A stretch of 64,000 bases of DNA from positions 62,001-126,000 of the IMG/VR virus record IMGVR_UViG_3300023179_004149. One strand, 5' to 3'. Positions 436 to 9,281 of this stretch are shown piece after piece (the stretch's first letter is position 1; each line of letters begins with the position of its first letter). The notes beneath the pieces are model-generated. The model did not search any database. It had not been told where the DNA came from and worked only from the letters and a program-made list of their open reading frames with translations. A program made the position numbers and the translations under genes.

Positions 436-2682
436 TTATATCGTGTCTATTAATGTTGAGATGTTATTTTCCTTTTTAACAAGAATTCTGTGGTCGGCCC
501 AATCTTGAATCAATGGATTATGACTGATAATCCAAATGTGTTCAAAGAACTGTTTGAGTTTTTCAAAAAACAGACCGACTTTTTCAAGGTTCTGGTTGGA
601 TACTTTTCCAGTAACTTCATCAAACACTATGATATTAGGTTTTGGTAATGAACATACTTTACTCAACACACATCTTAGTGCTAGAGAACTTACAGTTTTT
701 TCATACCCCGATCCCGCATTAATTGGTTTTTCAACACCTGTTTCGCTATCTACCATCCAGAACTCAACCTCACCCTTTTCATTCATGCGCATCTCAAGAA
801 CAAACTCACAACTATCAGCAAGAAGTATTTTAAGATGGCTATTAATGAGTGGTATCATAGTACTTAACACCATTTTAGAAATACCATTCTTACCGTAAAT
901 ATCCAAGTAAACCTTAAAAATGTGGTCTATCATTTCTTCGTTCTTCAACTCTTTGAGTAGTGCGTTATAACCCTCTATTTTACCATTAGCGGTCAGAATA
1001 TCTCTATCTGTTCCGTTTATTTGTAAAGATACGGTTTCTTTTTCTTCGTTCAAAGAATTCAAAGAGAATTTTATTTTTTGAATATCAGTATCTATTAACT
1101 GGTTCTTCTCAACCCTACTCTTTATATCTCTATAGTTCTTTAACTTCTCATTACCACGGATTAAGCTATCCTGATACGCTTTCAACTCTAAACGGCTTTT
1201 CTCAATTAATAAATTGTTCCTGTTATATAAATCCCAGGCTACTTTTGCTTTATCAAGACCCTCTATCTTAGTATTGGCTATTTTTATAATCTCTTGTGTT
1301 GTTTCAAGAGATTCGTTTTTCTCTTTGAGTGACGTTTCGTTTTTCTCGATTTCATCACTATGATCAACGTTGTCCAGTGCCCTTTTACAAGTCTGGCAAA
1401 TCTCACTATTCTTCAACATATCGATAGTGGCTTCAATCGTATGTATTTCCAGTTTGGTTTTTATCTCTCGTTCTGTATAATCTCGAAGCTCTCCTTTGAG
1501 AGTACCGTATAAATCAATATCATACTCAATTTTAGGTTCTGGCATAGCGTCGATAAGGTTTCTGATACTCTCTTCCTTATCTTTGATAAGAGATTCGAGT
1601 TTCTGTATACCAGTGATGATGTTTTCTTCGCTCGATTTGTATAATTCGGTATCGATATCGTTATATCGAGTTTTATATAATTTTTCTGATTCATCTGTCA
1701 ATTCGGTTATTTTGGTTTTTAGTTCGTTAAGTTTTGAGTTTAAACCAACTAACATACCTTGGTATTGTTTAATATGATCTTCTTCAAGCGTAATTTTAGC
1801 CATAATTTCTTGGCTATTGTTATAGTAAAGCTTTGATTTCTCTTTCCATTCTGTATATTTTTTCTTGGCTATCTTTTCTTTCTCACGGAAAAATTCAAGA
1901 CCTATAAACCTGGTTAATATCCTACCGCGCTCAGTTGGTTTGGTTTTAATTAAATCATCCAGATTATCACCCGTTGTTAAGATCGTAATCAAGAAATCAT
2001 CATAAGTACCAACATATGTTTTGATTAATTCATCGGTATACTTTCTTTGCTCACCATTTAATTGTTTTACGCCACCACGAGGTAAAACCTGATAAAAATC
2101 AACATCACCCTTACAAGTATGGGAACCATCTTTAGCTTTTTTTCTGGTTATTGTTCTTTTGATAATGTAGTCATCACCTTCAATCTCGACCTTACCCTTT
2201 ACCTCAACCAAATCAGAATCAAGGAATCTGTTAAAGACTTCCTCATTCTTATCTGTTTTGGTTGTAGTACCAAAAAATAAGAACAATAATAAGTCAACTG
2301 TCATAGTTGTGTTATGTGAAACAATACCATTAGTGTAATATTGCGCCACCTCGTCCACCTGAATATCATATAAATCACTTTTTTCCTCTAATAACTCAAC
2401 GCTCTTAACTAAACTCACACCATTAATTGTCTGTATGGGTTCACCAACCTTAAGAGTGTTAAGATTAATAAAGTGTCCATCCTCATGTTTCACTTTATGT
2501 AAATCAGCTCCCTCAACAACCATTGCATTTTCAAGTTCGCAACGATAAACATCAGCATTTTTTTCCGTAATACCGCACCATATTATGTCTTTATAACCAT
2601 AGGGTGTGTTTACCTTAATTCCAAGATTACCATATTTTTGATATAGCTCATTTAATTTACCAATCGTTATCTCTTTAATCAT
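436..2682 (-). CDS. sbcC: Split-intein C-fragment (124 aa) fused to the C-terminal part of Rad50/SbcC (gp46-like) ATPase
   Basis: Intein blocks B (GADLH), F (LYDIQV) and G (NGIVSHN) are followed by TTMTVD, the end of Walker A. Also long coiled coil, zinc hook CQTC, signature-like GSGYEK, Walker B IIVFDE and H-loop IISH. Confidence 0.93.
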   Translation of the reverse strand: MIKEITIGKLNELYQKYGNLGIKVNTPYGYKDIIWCGITEKNADVYRCELENAMVVEGADLHKVKHEDGHFINLNTLKVGEPIQTINGVSLVKSVELLEEKSDLYDIQVDEVAQYYTNGIVSHNTTMTVDLLLFLFFGTTTKTDKNEEVFNRFLDSDLVEVKGKVEIEGDDYIIKRTITRKKAKDGSHTCKGDVDFYQVLPRGGVKQLNGEQRKYTDELIKTYVGTYDDFLITILTTGDNLDDLIKTKPTERGRILTRFIGLEFFREKEKIAKKKYTEWKEKSKLYYNNSQEIMAKITLEEDHIKQYQGMLVGLNSKLNELKTKITELTDESEKLYKTRYNDIDTELYKSSEENIITGIQKLESLIKDKEESIRNLIDAMPEPKIEYDIDLYGTLKGELRDYTEREIKTKLEIHTIEATIDMLKNSEICQTCKRALDNVDHSDEIEKNETSLKEKNESLETTQEIIKIANTKIEGLDKAKVAWDLYNRNNLLIEKSRLELKAYQDSLIRGNEKLKNYRDIKSRVEKNQLIDTDIQKIKFSLNSLNEEKETVSLQINGTDRDILTANGKIEGYNALLKELKNEEMIDHIFKVYLDIYGKNGISKMVLSTMIPLINSHLKILLADSCEFVLEMRMNEKGEVEFWMVDSETGVEKPINAGSGYEKTVSSLALRCVLSKVCSLPKPNIIVFDEVTGKVSNQNLEKVGLFFEKLKQFFEHIWIISHNPLIQDWADHRILVKKENNISTLIDTI
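2311..2682 (-). mobile_element. Split intein C-fragment (IntC, 124 aa; +1 residue Thr)
   Basis: MIKEITIGKL...YYTNGIVSHN|T: HINT-fold motifs without block A and without an endonuclease domain. Confidence 0.9.
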
Positions 2683-4355: not shown

Positions 4356-4593
4356 TTTCTATTCTTTTATTGGTTACGGTAATTGTGTTGTCTTCTTGTT
4401 TAATTTCTGGTTGAGGTGTTTCTTCTTTTCCTATCGGACTTTGTTTAATCTCAATGTCTGGTTTATTACCGTACTTAAGAACCGAAAAAGCATTCCCAAT
4501 GAGATCATTTAAAAATTTATCTGGATCGCCAATATCGTTAATCTTACAATATAATTCGATCTCATCAAGTTGTTTCTTATTAAGTTTAAGCAT
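4324..4593 (-). CDS. hypothetical protein (89 aa)
   Basis: ATG at 4593 overlaps the sbcD stop (ATGCTTAA) and is preferred over the track's TTG start at 4620. Fills the gap between sbcD and sbcC-N. Confidence 0.65.
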   Translation of the reverse strand: MLKLNKKQLDEIELYCKINDIGDPDKFLNDLIGNAFSVLKYGNKPDIEIKQSPIGKEETPQPEIKQEDNTITVTNKRIENDNYNDIYDI

Positions 4594-5386
4594 TGGTAAA
4601 TATTTCGCAACCCTCTTCAATATCCGAAAAATCAGTTATTTTGAAGGTAAGGTATTTAACGGGATTATCGATATCGTAAAGTTTATAGTCGAAACCATTA
4701 TCAGTAATAGTAAGAACACCATATCCGTGTTGGGACACAGTTTCTCCGTAATTTTGTTGAATCATGCTACCAGGATAGATAACATCTATACCTGATTTGG
4801 TTTTTAATATCTGTCTTTTGTGTATATCACCGCACATTACGATATGACAATCAGCGAACTTTTCAACGTCGACACCATGAGTAAAACTATAACCCATTTC
4901 ATTAACAGCTCCAACTATTACACCATGAAACAACCCTATTTTCTTTTTACCTTTATATGAATTATGATGTAGTTGTTCGGGTGTAGCATGACTATCAAAA
5001 ATAGAATACACGACCCAGGCTACGTCATCATCTTCAATAACATCAGACTTGGTGTAATAGTGAATATTATCCAAATCCAAGGCCTTGATGATTGGTGTTA
5101 ACGCATCCATACGCTCTTTGTTCTGTTCAACAATATCGTGATTACCAGGTATTATAATTACTTTCTTAGTTACTGACGAGCATTGAGTTAAAAACCAACT
5201 GACCTCGTTTACCAACTCAGGGCTTATTTGGTTTCTTGAATGTACTATATCACCAGCGATAACAATCCTATCAGGTTGTATCTTTTTCATTTGGTCGATA
5301 AAGTTTGAACACACAGATCTGAATTCTATGTGTCTTTGGATATTCCTAAAATGAATATCTGCAATATGCGCAATTGTTTTAATCAT
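4586..5386 (-). CDS. sbcD: Mre11/SbcD-like (gp47-like) metallophosphoesterase nuclease
   Basis: Five phosphoesterase motifs: ADIH, AGDIVH, PGNHD, FHG, GDIH. Adjacent to Rad50. Confidence 0.92.
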   Translation of the reverse strand: MIKTIAHIADIHFRNIQRHIEFRSVCSNFIDQMKKIQPDRIVIAGDIVHSRNQISPELVNEVSWFLTQCSSVTKKVIIIPGNHDIVEQNKERMDALTPIIKALDLDNIHYYTKSDVIEDDDVAWVVYSIFDSHATPEQLHHNSYKGKKKIGLFHGVIVGAVNEMGYSFTHGVDVEKFADCHIVMCGDIHKRQILKTKSGIDVIYPGSMIQQNYGETVSQHGYGVLTITDNGFDYKLYDIDNPVKYLTFKITDFSDIEEGCEIFTNA

Positions 5387-5399
5387 AATATTTTTATAT

Positions 5400-5825
5400 T
5401 TAACAATGTTCTTTTCTTGAATATTTAGTCCAATGCAGCCAACCTAATGTTTTAGTAATAAAACCCCATTCACGTGTTCTTTTGAAATTAAAAAATAAAG
5501 TATGACATGGTATTTCATTACCATTTTCATCCATCGCTAATTGCAATCTATGTACCCATGTTGCTGGCCTAAAGATTATTGAGCCTGGTTTATACCAAAC
5601 ACTTTTTTGAACCCCGTTATTATCACTAATTTCATAATAACCGCCCTTAAGCACAATACTCATAAAAGCCCAAGGATGGTCGTGCAAACATTCATCATCA
5701 CTTAAAACGATATTATGATGTTTAATCGAAAATAATTCGCCAATAGTTAAAAGAGTTCTCCTTATCAAATAAGGTTTACCATCATCTCTGGTAATAACGG
5801 TTCTTTTAAAGAGCTTTTTTTTCAT
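5400..5825 (-). CDS. cupin-fold protein
   Basis: LHDHPWAFMSIVLKGGYYE and a distal WVHRL form the cupin HxH...E...H metal motif. Confidence 0.7.
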   Translation of the reverse strand: MKKKLFKRTVITRDDGKPYLIRRTLLTIGELFSIKHHNIVLSDDECLHDHPWAFMSIVLKGGYYEISDNNGVQKSVWYKPGSIIFRPATWVHRLQLAMDENGNEIPCHTLFFNFKRTREWGFITKTLGWLHWTKYSRKEHC

Positions 5826-5827
5826 TT

Positions 5828-7555
5828 TTATTTTAATAATTTTAGTTTAAAATGGTCAATCAACATTTCAGCTTCGCGCTTCATGTATGCAACTGGAATT
5901 AATTTGAAAGTCTGAGAAAACTTATCCCAATAGAATAAACCAGCCCTATTAAACTTACGTCCAGTTTCTCTTTCGTACATTACACCATATACCGACAACT
6001 GTAATGTATAATCGTTGTACTGACAATGAGTCAAATGGTTTACTGGGAAATGTAAATATTCACCATAGGCATTCTCGTATTCAAATTTTTTATTTGTATT
6101 ATGTGTTTTAATATAATTTCTCGTCGCTAAATAAGTGTGATTTTTGCTTTCAACGGCCAAACATTTTGTTGGTACGGTATCTATTTTTTCTATTTTTTTA
6201 ACATATCTAAATTTCGATTTTTCTGTATCAGGTAAACAAATATCATTATAATTTTCCGTTTTACATAAAAAAGGATTCACACCGCCATGAGGTTTAAAAC
6301 AAACGTGAAGCGTCTTTATCTTTTTGTTATTACATGTTGTAAAAGCTTTTATTATTGTTGGTTTAAACCCTAACGAAGATATTAGTGTAGACATACCATC
6401 AGCTTGCCATTGTTGGGTTGTTATCATAACGCACCTGTCCCTTGTTTTATTATAATACCCGTCAGTATCCATAAACCCACGTAATAAATCTAACCTTTGT
6501 TGTTTGGATGCTCGTAAATATATATCAGGTATGTGTTTATTTTTTAATAACCCTAATTTATTTAACTTACCTCGTAAACCATAAATTGTTCTCGATTCGG
6601 CTAAACCACTTGAGCTGCCTGAAACATCTGAGCCTGTATCATACCCCCTATTTTTAAGTTCCTCCCAAATCATTTCGTTCATATTTGTCAAAACCCCACA
6701 GTCTTTTGAACCATCACCCAACCAAACCCCAAATACATAAGGGTCTATCGGTAACTCCAAATTTTTTTCCGTAATGACTTCGGTTGTTTCTATGCGTATG
6801 GGTTGTTTTTGTTTAAACATACCATATAAATCCTCTGTTGTTTTTATTACATTAGAATATTTATATTTTGATAATCTATTAGATATTTCCCATTTATGTT
6901 CGTGATCACAAATTATAGTATCATTTGTATCAAATGTTATTTTATAACATGGGTTATGGTGTATTTCCGATACATGTAATACTTTTGTTAAATTTCCTTC
7001 ACCATCAAAAATAACATCACCCACATTAATATCCGACATTAATTTAAAACCATCTTCTGTCGGTATTTCGGTATCAAGAGATAAACCTTTAAAATCCCAC
7101 ACATTAAATTTATCATAATCTAAGTCTTCGATAATATCGGATGTACCAGCAATACCAAGCTTATCATTAAACTCGTAAGACATGATATATTCTGGTTTTA
7201 AACGATCCGAATTAATCAAACTTAGTTTCTCGTCTGAACACACCTTTTTAAAAGCATTTAAAACCGTTTTTTCGTACTCATCCCTGGGAGAGTATATTCT
7301 ATGCGGCGCAAGTAAAAAGCGCTCTAAAATAGCGTGTAAATTAGTTCCGTATTCATTTGCAAGACGGTTGATTTCTCGCCATTCAGCAATCACCTCTTCT
7401 TTTGTTATTCCTTTTCTGTCCGCCACCCTCTGAGCGTGATAGTCTTCATCAAACTTTTCTTTGTACTTACCCAACATCGTGGTTACCGAAGTGTATTGCA
7501 TGTTTGGAAACTTGTCATTCACATAGGTGTGGGTTTCATGAATTAATTTTATCAT
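5828..7555 (-). CDS. PD-(D/E)xK (RecB/Cas4-like) exonuclease containing an intein
   Basis: Extein motifs SVTT, GTNLH, AGTSD, WDFK|TN and YTLQLSVY. Spliced length 245 aa. Confidence 0.88.
   Translation of the reverse strand: MIKLIHETHTYVNDKFPNMQYTSVTTMLGKYKEKFDEDYHAQRVADRKGITKEEVIAEWREINRLANEYGTNLHAILERFLLAPHRIYSPRDEYEKTVLNAFKKVCSDEKLSLINSDRLKPEYIMSYEFNDKLGIAGTSDIIEDLDYDKFNVWDFKGLSLDTEIPTEDGFKLMSDINVGDVIFDGEGNLTKVLHVSEIHHNPCYKITFDTNDTIICDHEHKWEISNRLSKYKYSNVIKTTEDLYGMFKQKQPIRIETTEVITEKNLELPIDPYVFGVWLGDGSKDCGVLTNMNEMIWEELKNRGYDTGSDVSGSSSGLAESRTIYGLRGKLNKLGLLKNKHIPDIYLRASKQQRLDLLRGFMDTDGYYNKTRDRCVMITTQQWQADGMSTLISSLGFKPTIIKAFTTCNNKKIKTLHVCFKPHGGVNPFLCKTENYNDICLPDTEKSKFRYVKKIEKIDTVPTKCLAVESKNHTYLATRNYIKTHNTNKKFEYENAYGEYLHFPVNHLTHCQYNDYTLQLSVYGVMYERETGRKFNRAGLFYWDKFSQTFKLIPVAYMKREAEMLIDHFKLKLLK
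6098..7087 (-). mobile_element. Class 3 (WCT) intein starting with Gly, with LAGLIDADG endonuclease, 330 aa
   Basis: Starts GLSLDTEIPT. Block B CDHEHKW, block F PTKCLAV, block G IKTHN|T. LAGLIDADG motifs FGVWLGDG and LRGFMDTDG. Confidence 0.9.
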
Positions 7556-9184: not shown

Positions 9185-9281
9185 TTGTTTCTTTTATATT
9201 TTTTTCGGTTAGTGTTTATTAACGCACATAAGAAGCTTCATTTGTATGGGATTCAAATAATCTATAAATATATAACATATT

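Follow-up and report, generated by a model that had tools for sequence, protein, structure and literature searches.

The 64,000-nucleotide stretch of DNA considered here (the window; positions 62001-126000 of one 320,934-bp contig, 34.5% G+C, IMG/VR virus record IMGVR_UViG_3300023179_004149) encodes a RecB-like PD-(D/E)xK exonuclease that is interrupted within its catalytic motif by an intein whose first residue is glycine. We found that the intein carries the complete signature of class 3, is precisely absent from the same gene in relatives, and belongs to a clade in which Gly1 is fixed. The best overall explanation, to which we assign a probability of roughly 0.8, is a RecB-like nuclease split by a mobile class 3 Gly1 intein that splices and homes; an earlier, sequence-only reading of this DNA had proposed a probably active Gly1 class 3 intein here.

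An intein at motif III of a RecB-like exonuclease

The list of open reading frames (ORFs) and their translations contains an uninterrupted 575-aa ORF, free of frameshifts and stops, which is the intein-interrupted exonuclease precursor. No other-frame ORF of 50 aa or more in the window list overlaps the intein. The layout of the gene in window coordinates is as follows.

5828..7555, minus strand: precursor gene, RecB-like PD-(D/E)xK exonuclease plus intein; 575 aa, TAA stop at 5828-5830
7088..7555, minus strand: N-extein, aa 1-156; motif II D140 and motif III D154-F-K156; last residue Lys-1
6098..7087, minus strand: intein, 330 aa, precursor G157-N486; HINT splicing domain with a LAGLIDADG homing endonuclease domain set into it
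5831..6097, minus strand: C-extein, aa 487-575; begins TNKK and carries a RecB-type Q-x-x-x-Y motif (YTLQLSVY, 5987-6010)

The boundaries of the insert are set by natural intein-less alleles. The exteins were searched separately, and the search with the N-extein recovered 245-aa proteins (575 - 330), namely P0127 and about 50 others, which we used as a stand-in for the spliced product. Apart from one gap of 330 residues, these align with the precursor without a break, and they read WDFK|TNKK, the bar marking the junction. The insert thus runs from Gly157 to Asn486, with Thr487 at +1, and the earlier expectation that removal would restore WDFK-TNKK is borne out exactly by natural proteins. The insert itself translates to 330 residues without a stop, opening GLSLDTEIPTEDG and closing KTHN; the sequence-only reading had described an intein at 6098-7087 with a Gly start, HKW, TKCL and KTHN and both LAGLIDADG motifs, and its coordinates and motifs all proved correct. 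Such precise absence from orthologous alleles that share the same synteny and have continuous, conserved flanks is what is expected of an intein, and closely related phages differ in whether they carry the element. The closest intein-less allele is P0127, which is identical at 232 of the 245 extein positions (95%). When the DNA of the two extein codon blocks was set side by side and compared with the natural allele as a check for a co-conversion tract around the homing site, the mismatches were evenly distributed.

The host protein is a RecB-like PD-(D/E)xK nuclease by its motifs, since D140 (motif II), D154-x-K156 (motif III) and Q519...Y523 (QxxxY) are all present, and the insertion between Lys156 and Thr487 separates motif III from the next residue. 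The exteins searched singly stay under the Pfam PF12705 threshold, but P0127 exceeds it (29.2 bits vs 22); the natural intein-less allele matches the phrog_298 exonuclease family at 1.4e-21, and the N-extein of the window matches the same family on its own at 2.5e-14. D154 and K156 are invariant in all 121 intein-bearing homologues described below, and Y516 and Y523 of the C-extein are invariant among the homologues compared. The exteins carry only two cysteines (C106 and C511) and so do not supply the four-cysteine iron-sulfur cluster of Cas4 sensu stricto (one N-terminal and three C-terminal Cys), on which ground we describe the host as RecB-like rather than as Cas4.

A complete class 3 signature

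The splicing and endonuclease motifs of the intein, all on the minus strand, are listed below.

7049..7087, minus strand: block A, GLSLDTEIPTEDG; Gly1 codon GGT at 7085-7087
6947..6949, minus strand: intein Cys47, within PCY; candidate partner of the block F Cys in a redox pair
6890..6907, minus strand: block B, DHEHKW; Asp B:7, His B:10 and Trp B:12 (the W of the WCT triplet)
6707..6742, minus strand: LAGLIDADG motif 1, block C, PYVFGVWLGDGS; conserved in homologues
6455..6487, minus strand: LAGLIDADG motif 2, block E, LLRGFMDTDGY; conserved in homologues
6125..6175, minus strand: block F, VPTKCLAVESKNHTYLA (including VPTKCLAVE); Cys F:4 is C309, codon 6161-6163; Thr F:2 and Thr F:14
6095..6118, minus strand: block G, NYIKTHN|T; Thr G:5 and His G:6, then Asn330 ending the intein and Thr+1 opening the C-extein

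Database searches yielded more than 1400 full-length precursor homologues, and from these matches we drew an alignment of 121 full-length sequences with 39-94% identity. G1, D61, H64, W66, T307, C309, T328, H329 and N330 (intein numbering) are invariant in all 121, and Thr occupies +1 in 119 of them, Ser in the other two. The WCT triplet (W66, C309, T328) is present in all 78 class 3 inteins compared, as is intein D125. The first residue is a non-nucleophile, Gly1 standing opposite Ala1 of MchDnaB1 and Msm DnaBi1, and the other marks of the class, His B:10 (H64), the C-terminal His-Asn (H329-N330) and Thr+1, are also in place. The full class 3 signature with Gly1 that had been read from the letters is thus both present and invariant. 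Block B also takes the form DxxH, as has been reported for inteins of class 3 (PMC12245125).

Comparison with known structures points the same way. Class 3 inteins take the first three places among the PDB sequence matches, the best being MchDnaB1 (6rix, 3.5e-13) and Mycobacterium smegmatis DnaBi1 (6bs8, 5.5e-12), and the class 1 intein gp41-1 ranks below them. Blocks A, B, F and G align residue for residue with MchDnaB1 and Msm DnaBi1, with C309 opposite the catalytic Cys in VPVRCVEVD. The whole insert is covered by PHROG profiles of terminases that bear inteins (4.5e-30). An AlphaFold2 (AF2) model of the precursor built with 50 homologues has a mean predicted local distance difference test score (pLDDT) of 87, and its best Foldseek matches are PI-SceI (1.5e-16), TliVMA and PI-PfuI, with I-DmoI (5e-5) and the class 3 mini-inteins also found. 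Given the full-length homologues, the terminase-family PHROG match and the class 3 PDB match, chance resemblance is ruled out. The endonuclease domain is equally well conserved. In motif 1, across 50 homologues, G276 and W278 (precursor numbering) are invariant and L279, G280, D281 and G282 are at least 90% conserved; in motif 2, R359, G360, M362, D363, D365 and G366 are invariant among the homologues compared. Two LAGLIDADG motifs with conserved acidic residues (D281, D363, D365), together with the fold matches, identify the domain as a homing endonuclease.

Glycine at position 1 is a lineage trait

A glycine at the first position of an intein might be suspected of being an artefact, either of sequencing or assembly at a Cys, Ser or Ala codon or of a misplaced boundary that assigns an extein residue to the intein. 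A single base change would suffice for the former, GGT being one step from TGT, AGT and GCT. This is nevertheless extremely improbable, and we reject it: the residue is Gly in 121 of 121 homologues, in 24 of 24 DxK-site inteins from bacterial assemblies, in three cultured phages and in 34 distinct IMG/VR copies, where it is encoded by GGA (13), GGT (13), GGG (6) and GGC (2), and in the intein-less alleles K is followed directly by T. Because all four Gly codons are used, the glycine is held by selection on the protein.

The phylogeny supports the same view. We built a quick maximum-likelihood tree from 35 Gly1 and 47 non-Gly inteins, with the position-1 column excluded and no class 1 outgroup. 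A single branch has all 35 Gly1 inteins on one side, with a Shimodaira-Hasegawa-like approximate likelihood ratio test (SH-aLRT) support of 92 (86 in another tree). As a phylogenetic check on the class assignment, the window intein groups in this outgroup-free tree with WCT inteins of terminases, RecT and nucleases. The earlier statement that Ala, and less often Pro, is the usual first residue also agrees with the tree, in which 38 of the 47 non-Gly inteins begin with Ala and 4 with Pro; more widely, class 3 inteins at sites other than DxK (mostly in terminases and at other P-loops) begin mostly with Ala, and also with Pro, Glu, Leu, Asp, Cys or Ser. The Gly1 clade consists of the DxK-site nuclease inteins and a small sister group inserted in RecT as MAKK|G...THN|TVIRR (L047:1504-2502 and L048:1522-2520; also L123, L121 and L154), the host being identified by its N-extein (PF03837, 1e-47). 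RecT is a second recombination protein targeted by the Gly1 lineage. Gly1 is thus a fixed trait of one class 3 clade that is widespread and environmentally abundant, and the window intein is not a one-off but a member of a large and already sampled lineage of phage nuclease inteins.

Residue 1 aside, the splicing domain of the clade is set apart at two block F positions, T307 and T318: F:2 is Thr in 32 of 32 Gly1 inteins and F:14 is Thr in 30 of 32, where other class 3 inteins have mostly Val and Leu, respectively. Since the clade has a single origin, this co-occurrence with Gly1 is a lead and not evidence of compensation.

Two variants were seen among the sequences collected. Gly1 inteins at the nuclease site on two contigs of metagenome-assembled genomes (L115 and L116; Micrococcales and an unclassified bacterium) have Cys at +1 (VIDHK|GLHVDTP...THN|CVGLA), a residue previously reported to be rare among class 3 inteins. 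Three Ala1 WCT inteins (L119, L135 and L173) end in Thr-Cys-Asn, with Cys in place of the penultimate His.

Predicted mechanism and activity

By homology to characterised class 3 inteins, splicing would be expected to run as follows. Gly1, having no side chain, would be unable to start the reaction. Cys F:4 (C309), the predicted initiating nucleophile, would attack the Lys156-Gly157 peptide bond, aided by two block B residues, His64 and Trp66, and by Thr328 in block G, to give a branched thioester. The N-extein would then be transferred to the hydroxyl of Thr+1, Asn330 would cyclise to release the intein, and an O-to-N acyl shift would yield an intact D-F-K-T motif and hence an active nuclease. 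The LAGLIDADG domain, for its part, would cut intein-less alleles of closely related phages, into which the element would be copied.

The intein might instead splice by a route other than that of class 3, either through direct attack of Thr+1 on the N-terminal junction, as in class 2, or with Cys309 in a purely structural role. The mechanism is read from sequence, Gly1 gives the scissile bond unusual freedom, and the clade has block F residues of its own (Thr F:2 and Thr F:14), all of which leave some room for this idea. We consider it unlikely, however. Class 2 comprises only KlbA orthologues, all with Cys+1, Ser G:6 and Asp F:4 (PMC4031507), in place of the Thr+1, His G:6 and Cys F:4 found here; moreover, the WCT triplet is invariant and Cys F:4 has been obligatory in every class 3 intein tested (PMC2807308, PMC5222942).

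Several observations weigh against an active class 3 Gly1 intein. The AF2 model falls below a pLDDT of 50 at both junctions (residues 156-159 and 488-490). The Pfam Intein_splicing profile (PF14890) scores only 14 bits on the intein vs a cut-off of 35.8, and LAGLIDADG_3 is likewise sub-threshold (18 bits vs 22.5), although the Intein_splicing profile is insensitive to this lineage and the fold and PDB matches compensate. Full-text literature searches found no experiments on a Gly1 class 3 intein with an intact WCT triplet, which is not proof that none exist. Finally, the two most relevant published results are unfavourable. The A1G substitution abolished trans-splicing of the class 3 AceL NrdHF split intein (PMC7891396), which means that Gly at position 1 is not automatically tolerated, and the sole Gly1 intein to have been tested, Arth_1007 of Arthrobacter FB24, is a dead pseudogene that lacks Cys F:4 and His B:10 (PMC3196547).

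The last two results would be readily understood if the window intein were a decaying, non-splicing remnant like Arth_1007, its ORF persisting while the nuclease is inactive and its function is taken over by other phage or host nucleases; SbcCD-like nucleases are indeed encoded nearby. We regard this as very unlikely and reject it. The ORF has no frameshift or stop, the splicing residues are invariant in 121 diverged homologues, the endonuclease acidic residues are conserved, and intein-bearing genes keep D154, K156 and the QxxxY tyrosines without exception. The exteins of two intein-bearing genes also differ far more at synonymous than at nonsynonymous sites: the proportions of nonsynonymous/synonymous differences are 0.14/0.86 in the exteins, 0.23/0.61 in the splicing domain and 0.22/0.67 in the endonuclease. 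Between the exteins and the intein-less allele, dN (nonsynonymous divergence) is 0.027 and dS (synonymous divergence) about 1.3, although the dN/dS figures are rough because dS is near saturation, a further caution against leaning on them.

That D154 and K156 are kept in intein-bearing genes argues that the insert is removed and the nuclease reconstituted, and the conservation of the LAGLIDADG acidic residues alongside co-circulating intein-less alleles fits ongoing homing. The intein at the same nuclease motif in Catera gp206, also class 3, splices efficiently (PMC3196547). The description of the element as 'probably active' therefore stands as a judgement from sequence conservation: splicing, endonuclease and nuclease residues are kept in homologues as distant as 39% identity and dN/dS lies well under 1, and we conclude that the class 3 Gly1 intein is probably splicing and homing.

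A candidate for redox control

It had also been suggested that dependence on the block F cysteine could make maturation of the nuclease redox-sensitive. In Msm DnaBi1, oxidants cause Cys48 to form a disulfide with Cys118, the catalytic block F cysteine, and splicing is thereby reversibly blocked; Cys48 is also needed for splicing in its own right (PMC6195587). Cys47 of the window intein lies opposite this Cys48 in the alignment and, like it, within PCY, and the redox idea thereby gains a specific structural candidate. Cys47 is invariant in 121 of 121 homologues and is present in 38 of 46 other class 3 inteins. By analogy with DnaBi1, it is plausible that nuclease maturation responds to redox conditions through Cys47 and the block F Cys.

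A more ambitious proposal is that the Gly1 clade is a mechanistic sub-variant with a re-tuned active site. Gly1, which costs AceL NrdHF its activity when engineered in as A1G, would on this view be obligatory in the clade, and activation of the N-scissile bond would not need the side-chain strain that has been proposed for inteins with Ala1 or Pro1. Thr F:2 and F:14 flanking the catalytic Cys and the invariant Asp B:7 would be part of this re-tuning, and a Cys47-Cys309 pair would make maturation of the nuclease (and of RecT) reversible under oxidative stress. We put this forward tentatively and would not be surprised to see it fail.

Relation to known inteins

The closest known systems are the inteins of the Cas4/RecB-like exonucleases of actinobacteriophages, which share the host family and the insertion point, after the Lys of the motif III (D/E)xK and before Thr. 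Those of Catera/Rizal gp206, ScoobyDoobyDoo gp195, Frankenweenie gp79 and Traft412 gp72 have the same WCT triplet, the same combination of HINT and LAGLIDADG domains and a length of about 330 aa, with junctions reading VELK|S...THN|TQNS in Rizal, EFK|A in ScoobyDoobyDoo, DWK|G in Frankenweenie and DYK|G in Traft412. Frankenweenie, Traft412 and the Pseudomonas phage Rollin have Gly1 (DxK|GL...) and fall in the same clade as the window intein, whereas Catera/Rizal gp206 (Ser1) and ScoobyDoobyDoo gp195 (Ala1) occupy ExK sites and lie outside it. The window intein differs from the cultured-phage copies in sequence (only 29-36% identity) and in its setting, an AT-rich 321-kb genome that looks like that of a jumbo phage and not an actinophage.

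These inteins have been surveyed before. In cluster C1 mycobacteriophages, Kelley et al. described 40 inteins that interrupt RecB-like nucleases at the PD-(D/E)xK motif (PMC5050341), and Gosselin et al. counted 138 Cas4 exonuclease inteins among 784, assigned them to class 3 with motif III (EFKT) as their site, and included phage Frankenweenie in their class 3 tree (bioRxiv 10.1101/2025.01.02.630785). The view of the sequence-only reading that the host protein is an uncommon one is accordingly not upheld: the RecB/Cas4-like exonuclease is the second commonest intein host in actinobacteriophages (PMC5050341, bioRxiv 10.1101/2025.01.02.630785), and the Gly1 form occurs in more than 1400 database proteins as well as in the cultured phages. 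Glycine at position 1 is nowhere mentioned in the main text of either survey (PMC5050341, bioRxiv 10.1101/2025.01.02.630785), and the Gly1 form is thus already in public cultured-phage data but so far unremarked.

Three other groups are informative. The class 3 DnaB inteins MchDnaB1 (M. chimaera, 6rix/6riy) and Msm DnaBi1 (6bs8), which gave the best PDB matches (3.5e-13 to 5.5e-12), share blocks A, B (DxxHxW), F (VPxxC) and G (THN) and the PCY cysteine; they differ in being mini-inteins of 139-145 aa without an endonuclease, in having Ala1, and in residing at a helicase P-loop (GK|S). The class 3 inteins at the P-loop of terminase large subunits (e.g. Cjw1 gp8) are about 30% identical over 330 aa, including the LAGLIDADG domain, and likewise lie between a catalytic Lys and a Thr or Ser; a switch of exteins, from terminase to Cas4 exonuclease, has been put forward (bioRxiv 10.1101/2025.01.02.630785). 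They differ in host, in Val F:2 and Leu F:14, and in beginning mostly with Ala (Pro, Glu, Leu and Cys also occur at this or other sites). Finally, the intein of Arthrobacter FB24 Arth_1007 was in 2009 the sole Gly1 intein recorded as grouping with class 3, and Tori et al., who defined the class, noted that it had WDT rather than WCT (PMC2807308). Its exteins are 52 and 14 aa long and it is inactive even after back-mutation (PMC3196547), whereas the window intein has all of its catalytic residues and conserved exteins.

Genomic setting

The exonuclease gene belongs to a block of replication and recombination genes that also includes SbcC-like, SbcD-like, primase and RuvC-like genes. The gene order RuvC-like, primase, exonuclease, SbcD-like is kept in relatives whether the intein is present or absent. 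A GenBank phage nucleotide search matched a single 169-bp patch and nothing else. The neighbouring genes on one side of the exonuclease are the following.

436-2682, minus strand: SbcC-like gene; phrog_77, 3e-39
4586-5386, minus strand: SbcD-like gene; phrog_100, 2e-26, and Pfam Metallophos
5400-5825, minus strand: 141-aa ORF between the exonuclease and the SbcD-like gene; phrog_4786 'cysteine dioxygenase', 2e-35

With SbcC-like and SbcD-like genes flanking the region, the intein-bearing nuclease belongs to a broader DNA end-processing set encoded by the phage. The 141-aa ORF has no Pfam match; it is not found at the corresponding place in the related contigs L096 and L098, and another relative has a 100-aa ORF there. 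In relatives with an intein-less exonuclease, a 228-aa ORF with a NUMOD3 domain (L098:681-1367, L099:681-1367) lies between a 645-aa gene and the RuvC-like gene, where the window has just a 97-bp gap (9185-9281). The NUMOD3-domain ORF is likely to be a free-standing homing endonuclease, and its presence or absence is a second mobile-element polymorphism in the exonuclease gene block.

As to the contig as a whole, its opening 30 bases reappear at base 320796, about 138 bp before the end, a pattern of circularity or terminal redundancy. A single block of 31 tRNA genes (contig 8444-30834) includes one with a CTA anticodon (amber-suppressor-like) and one to which ARAGORN gave a four-base anticodon. 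Stop-codon recoding linked to the CTA-anticodon tRNA was considered and rejected: TAG terminates 15 of 261 long ORFs, coding under code 11 is dense, and there is no sign of recoding.

At least seven further inteins occur in the same genome outside the window (135240-138134, 160376-163414, 175756-178137, 181502-183505 and 318088-320193). Two are class 3 inteins in one PhoH-like ATPase, with Ala1 after GSGK and Pro1 after FLKG; an SNF2 helicase intein has Cys1 with a full WCT triplet; and the others are one of class 1 at an AAA ATPase P-loop, two in a terminase-like ORF and one in the ORF at 318088-320193. From the nuclease, PhoH-like and SNF2 copies, the WCT inteins of this one phage show four different first residues (Gly, Ala, Pro and Cys).

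Implications

The element, neat as it is, adds one more ordinary example to a class and a kind of site that were both known already, and the general picture of inteins is unchanged by it. There is a practical consequence for annotation: this lineage escapes Pfam, and genes of this kind often carry the label 'HNH endonuclease' or 'hypothetical'. Inteins of class 3 are useful in protein engineering and as models of conditional splicing, and a naturally fixed Gly1 is of some interest in view of the failure of AceL NrdHF to splice once A1G is introduced (PMC7891396): the clade is a counter-example to that single engineered result, and it offers hundreds of diverged sequences for studying how the N-scissile bond is activated. 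For the phages themselves, the splitting of a catalytic motif, together with retention of the cysteine pair of the mycobacterial DnaB redox switch, suggests that phage recombination could be gated by the conditions of the cell.

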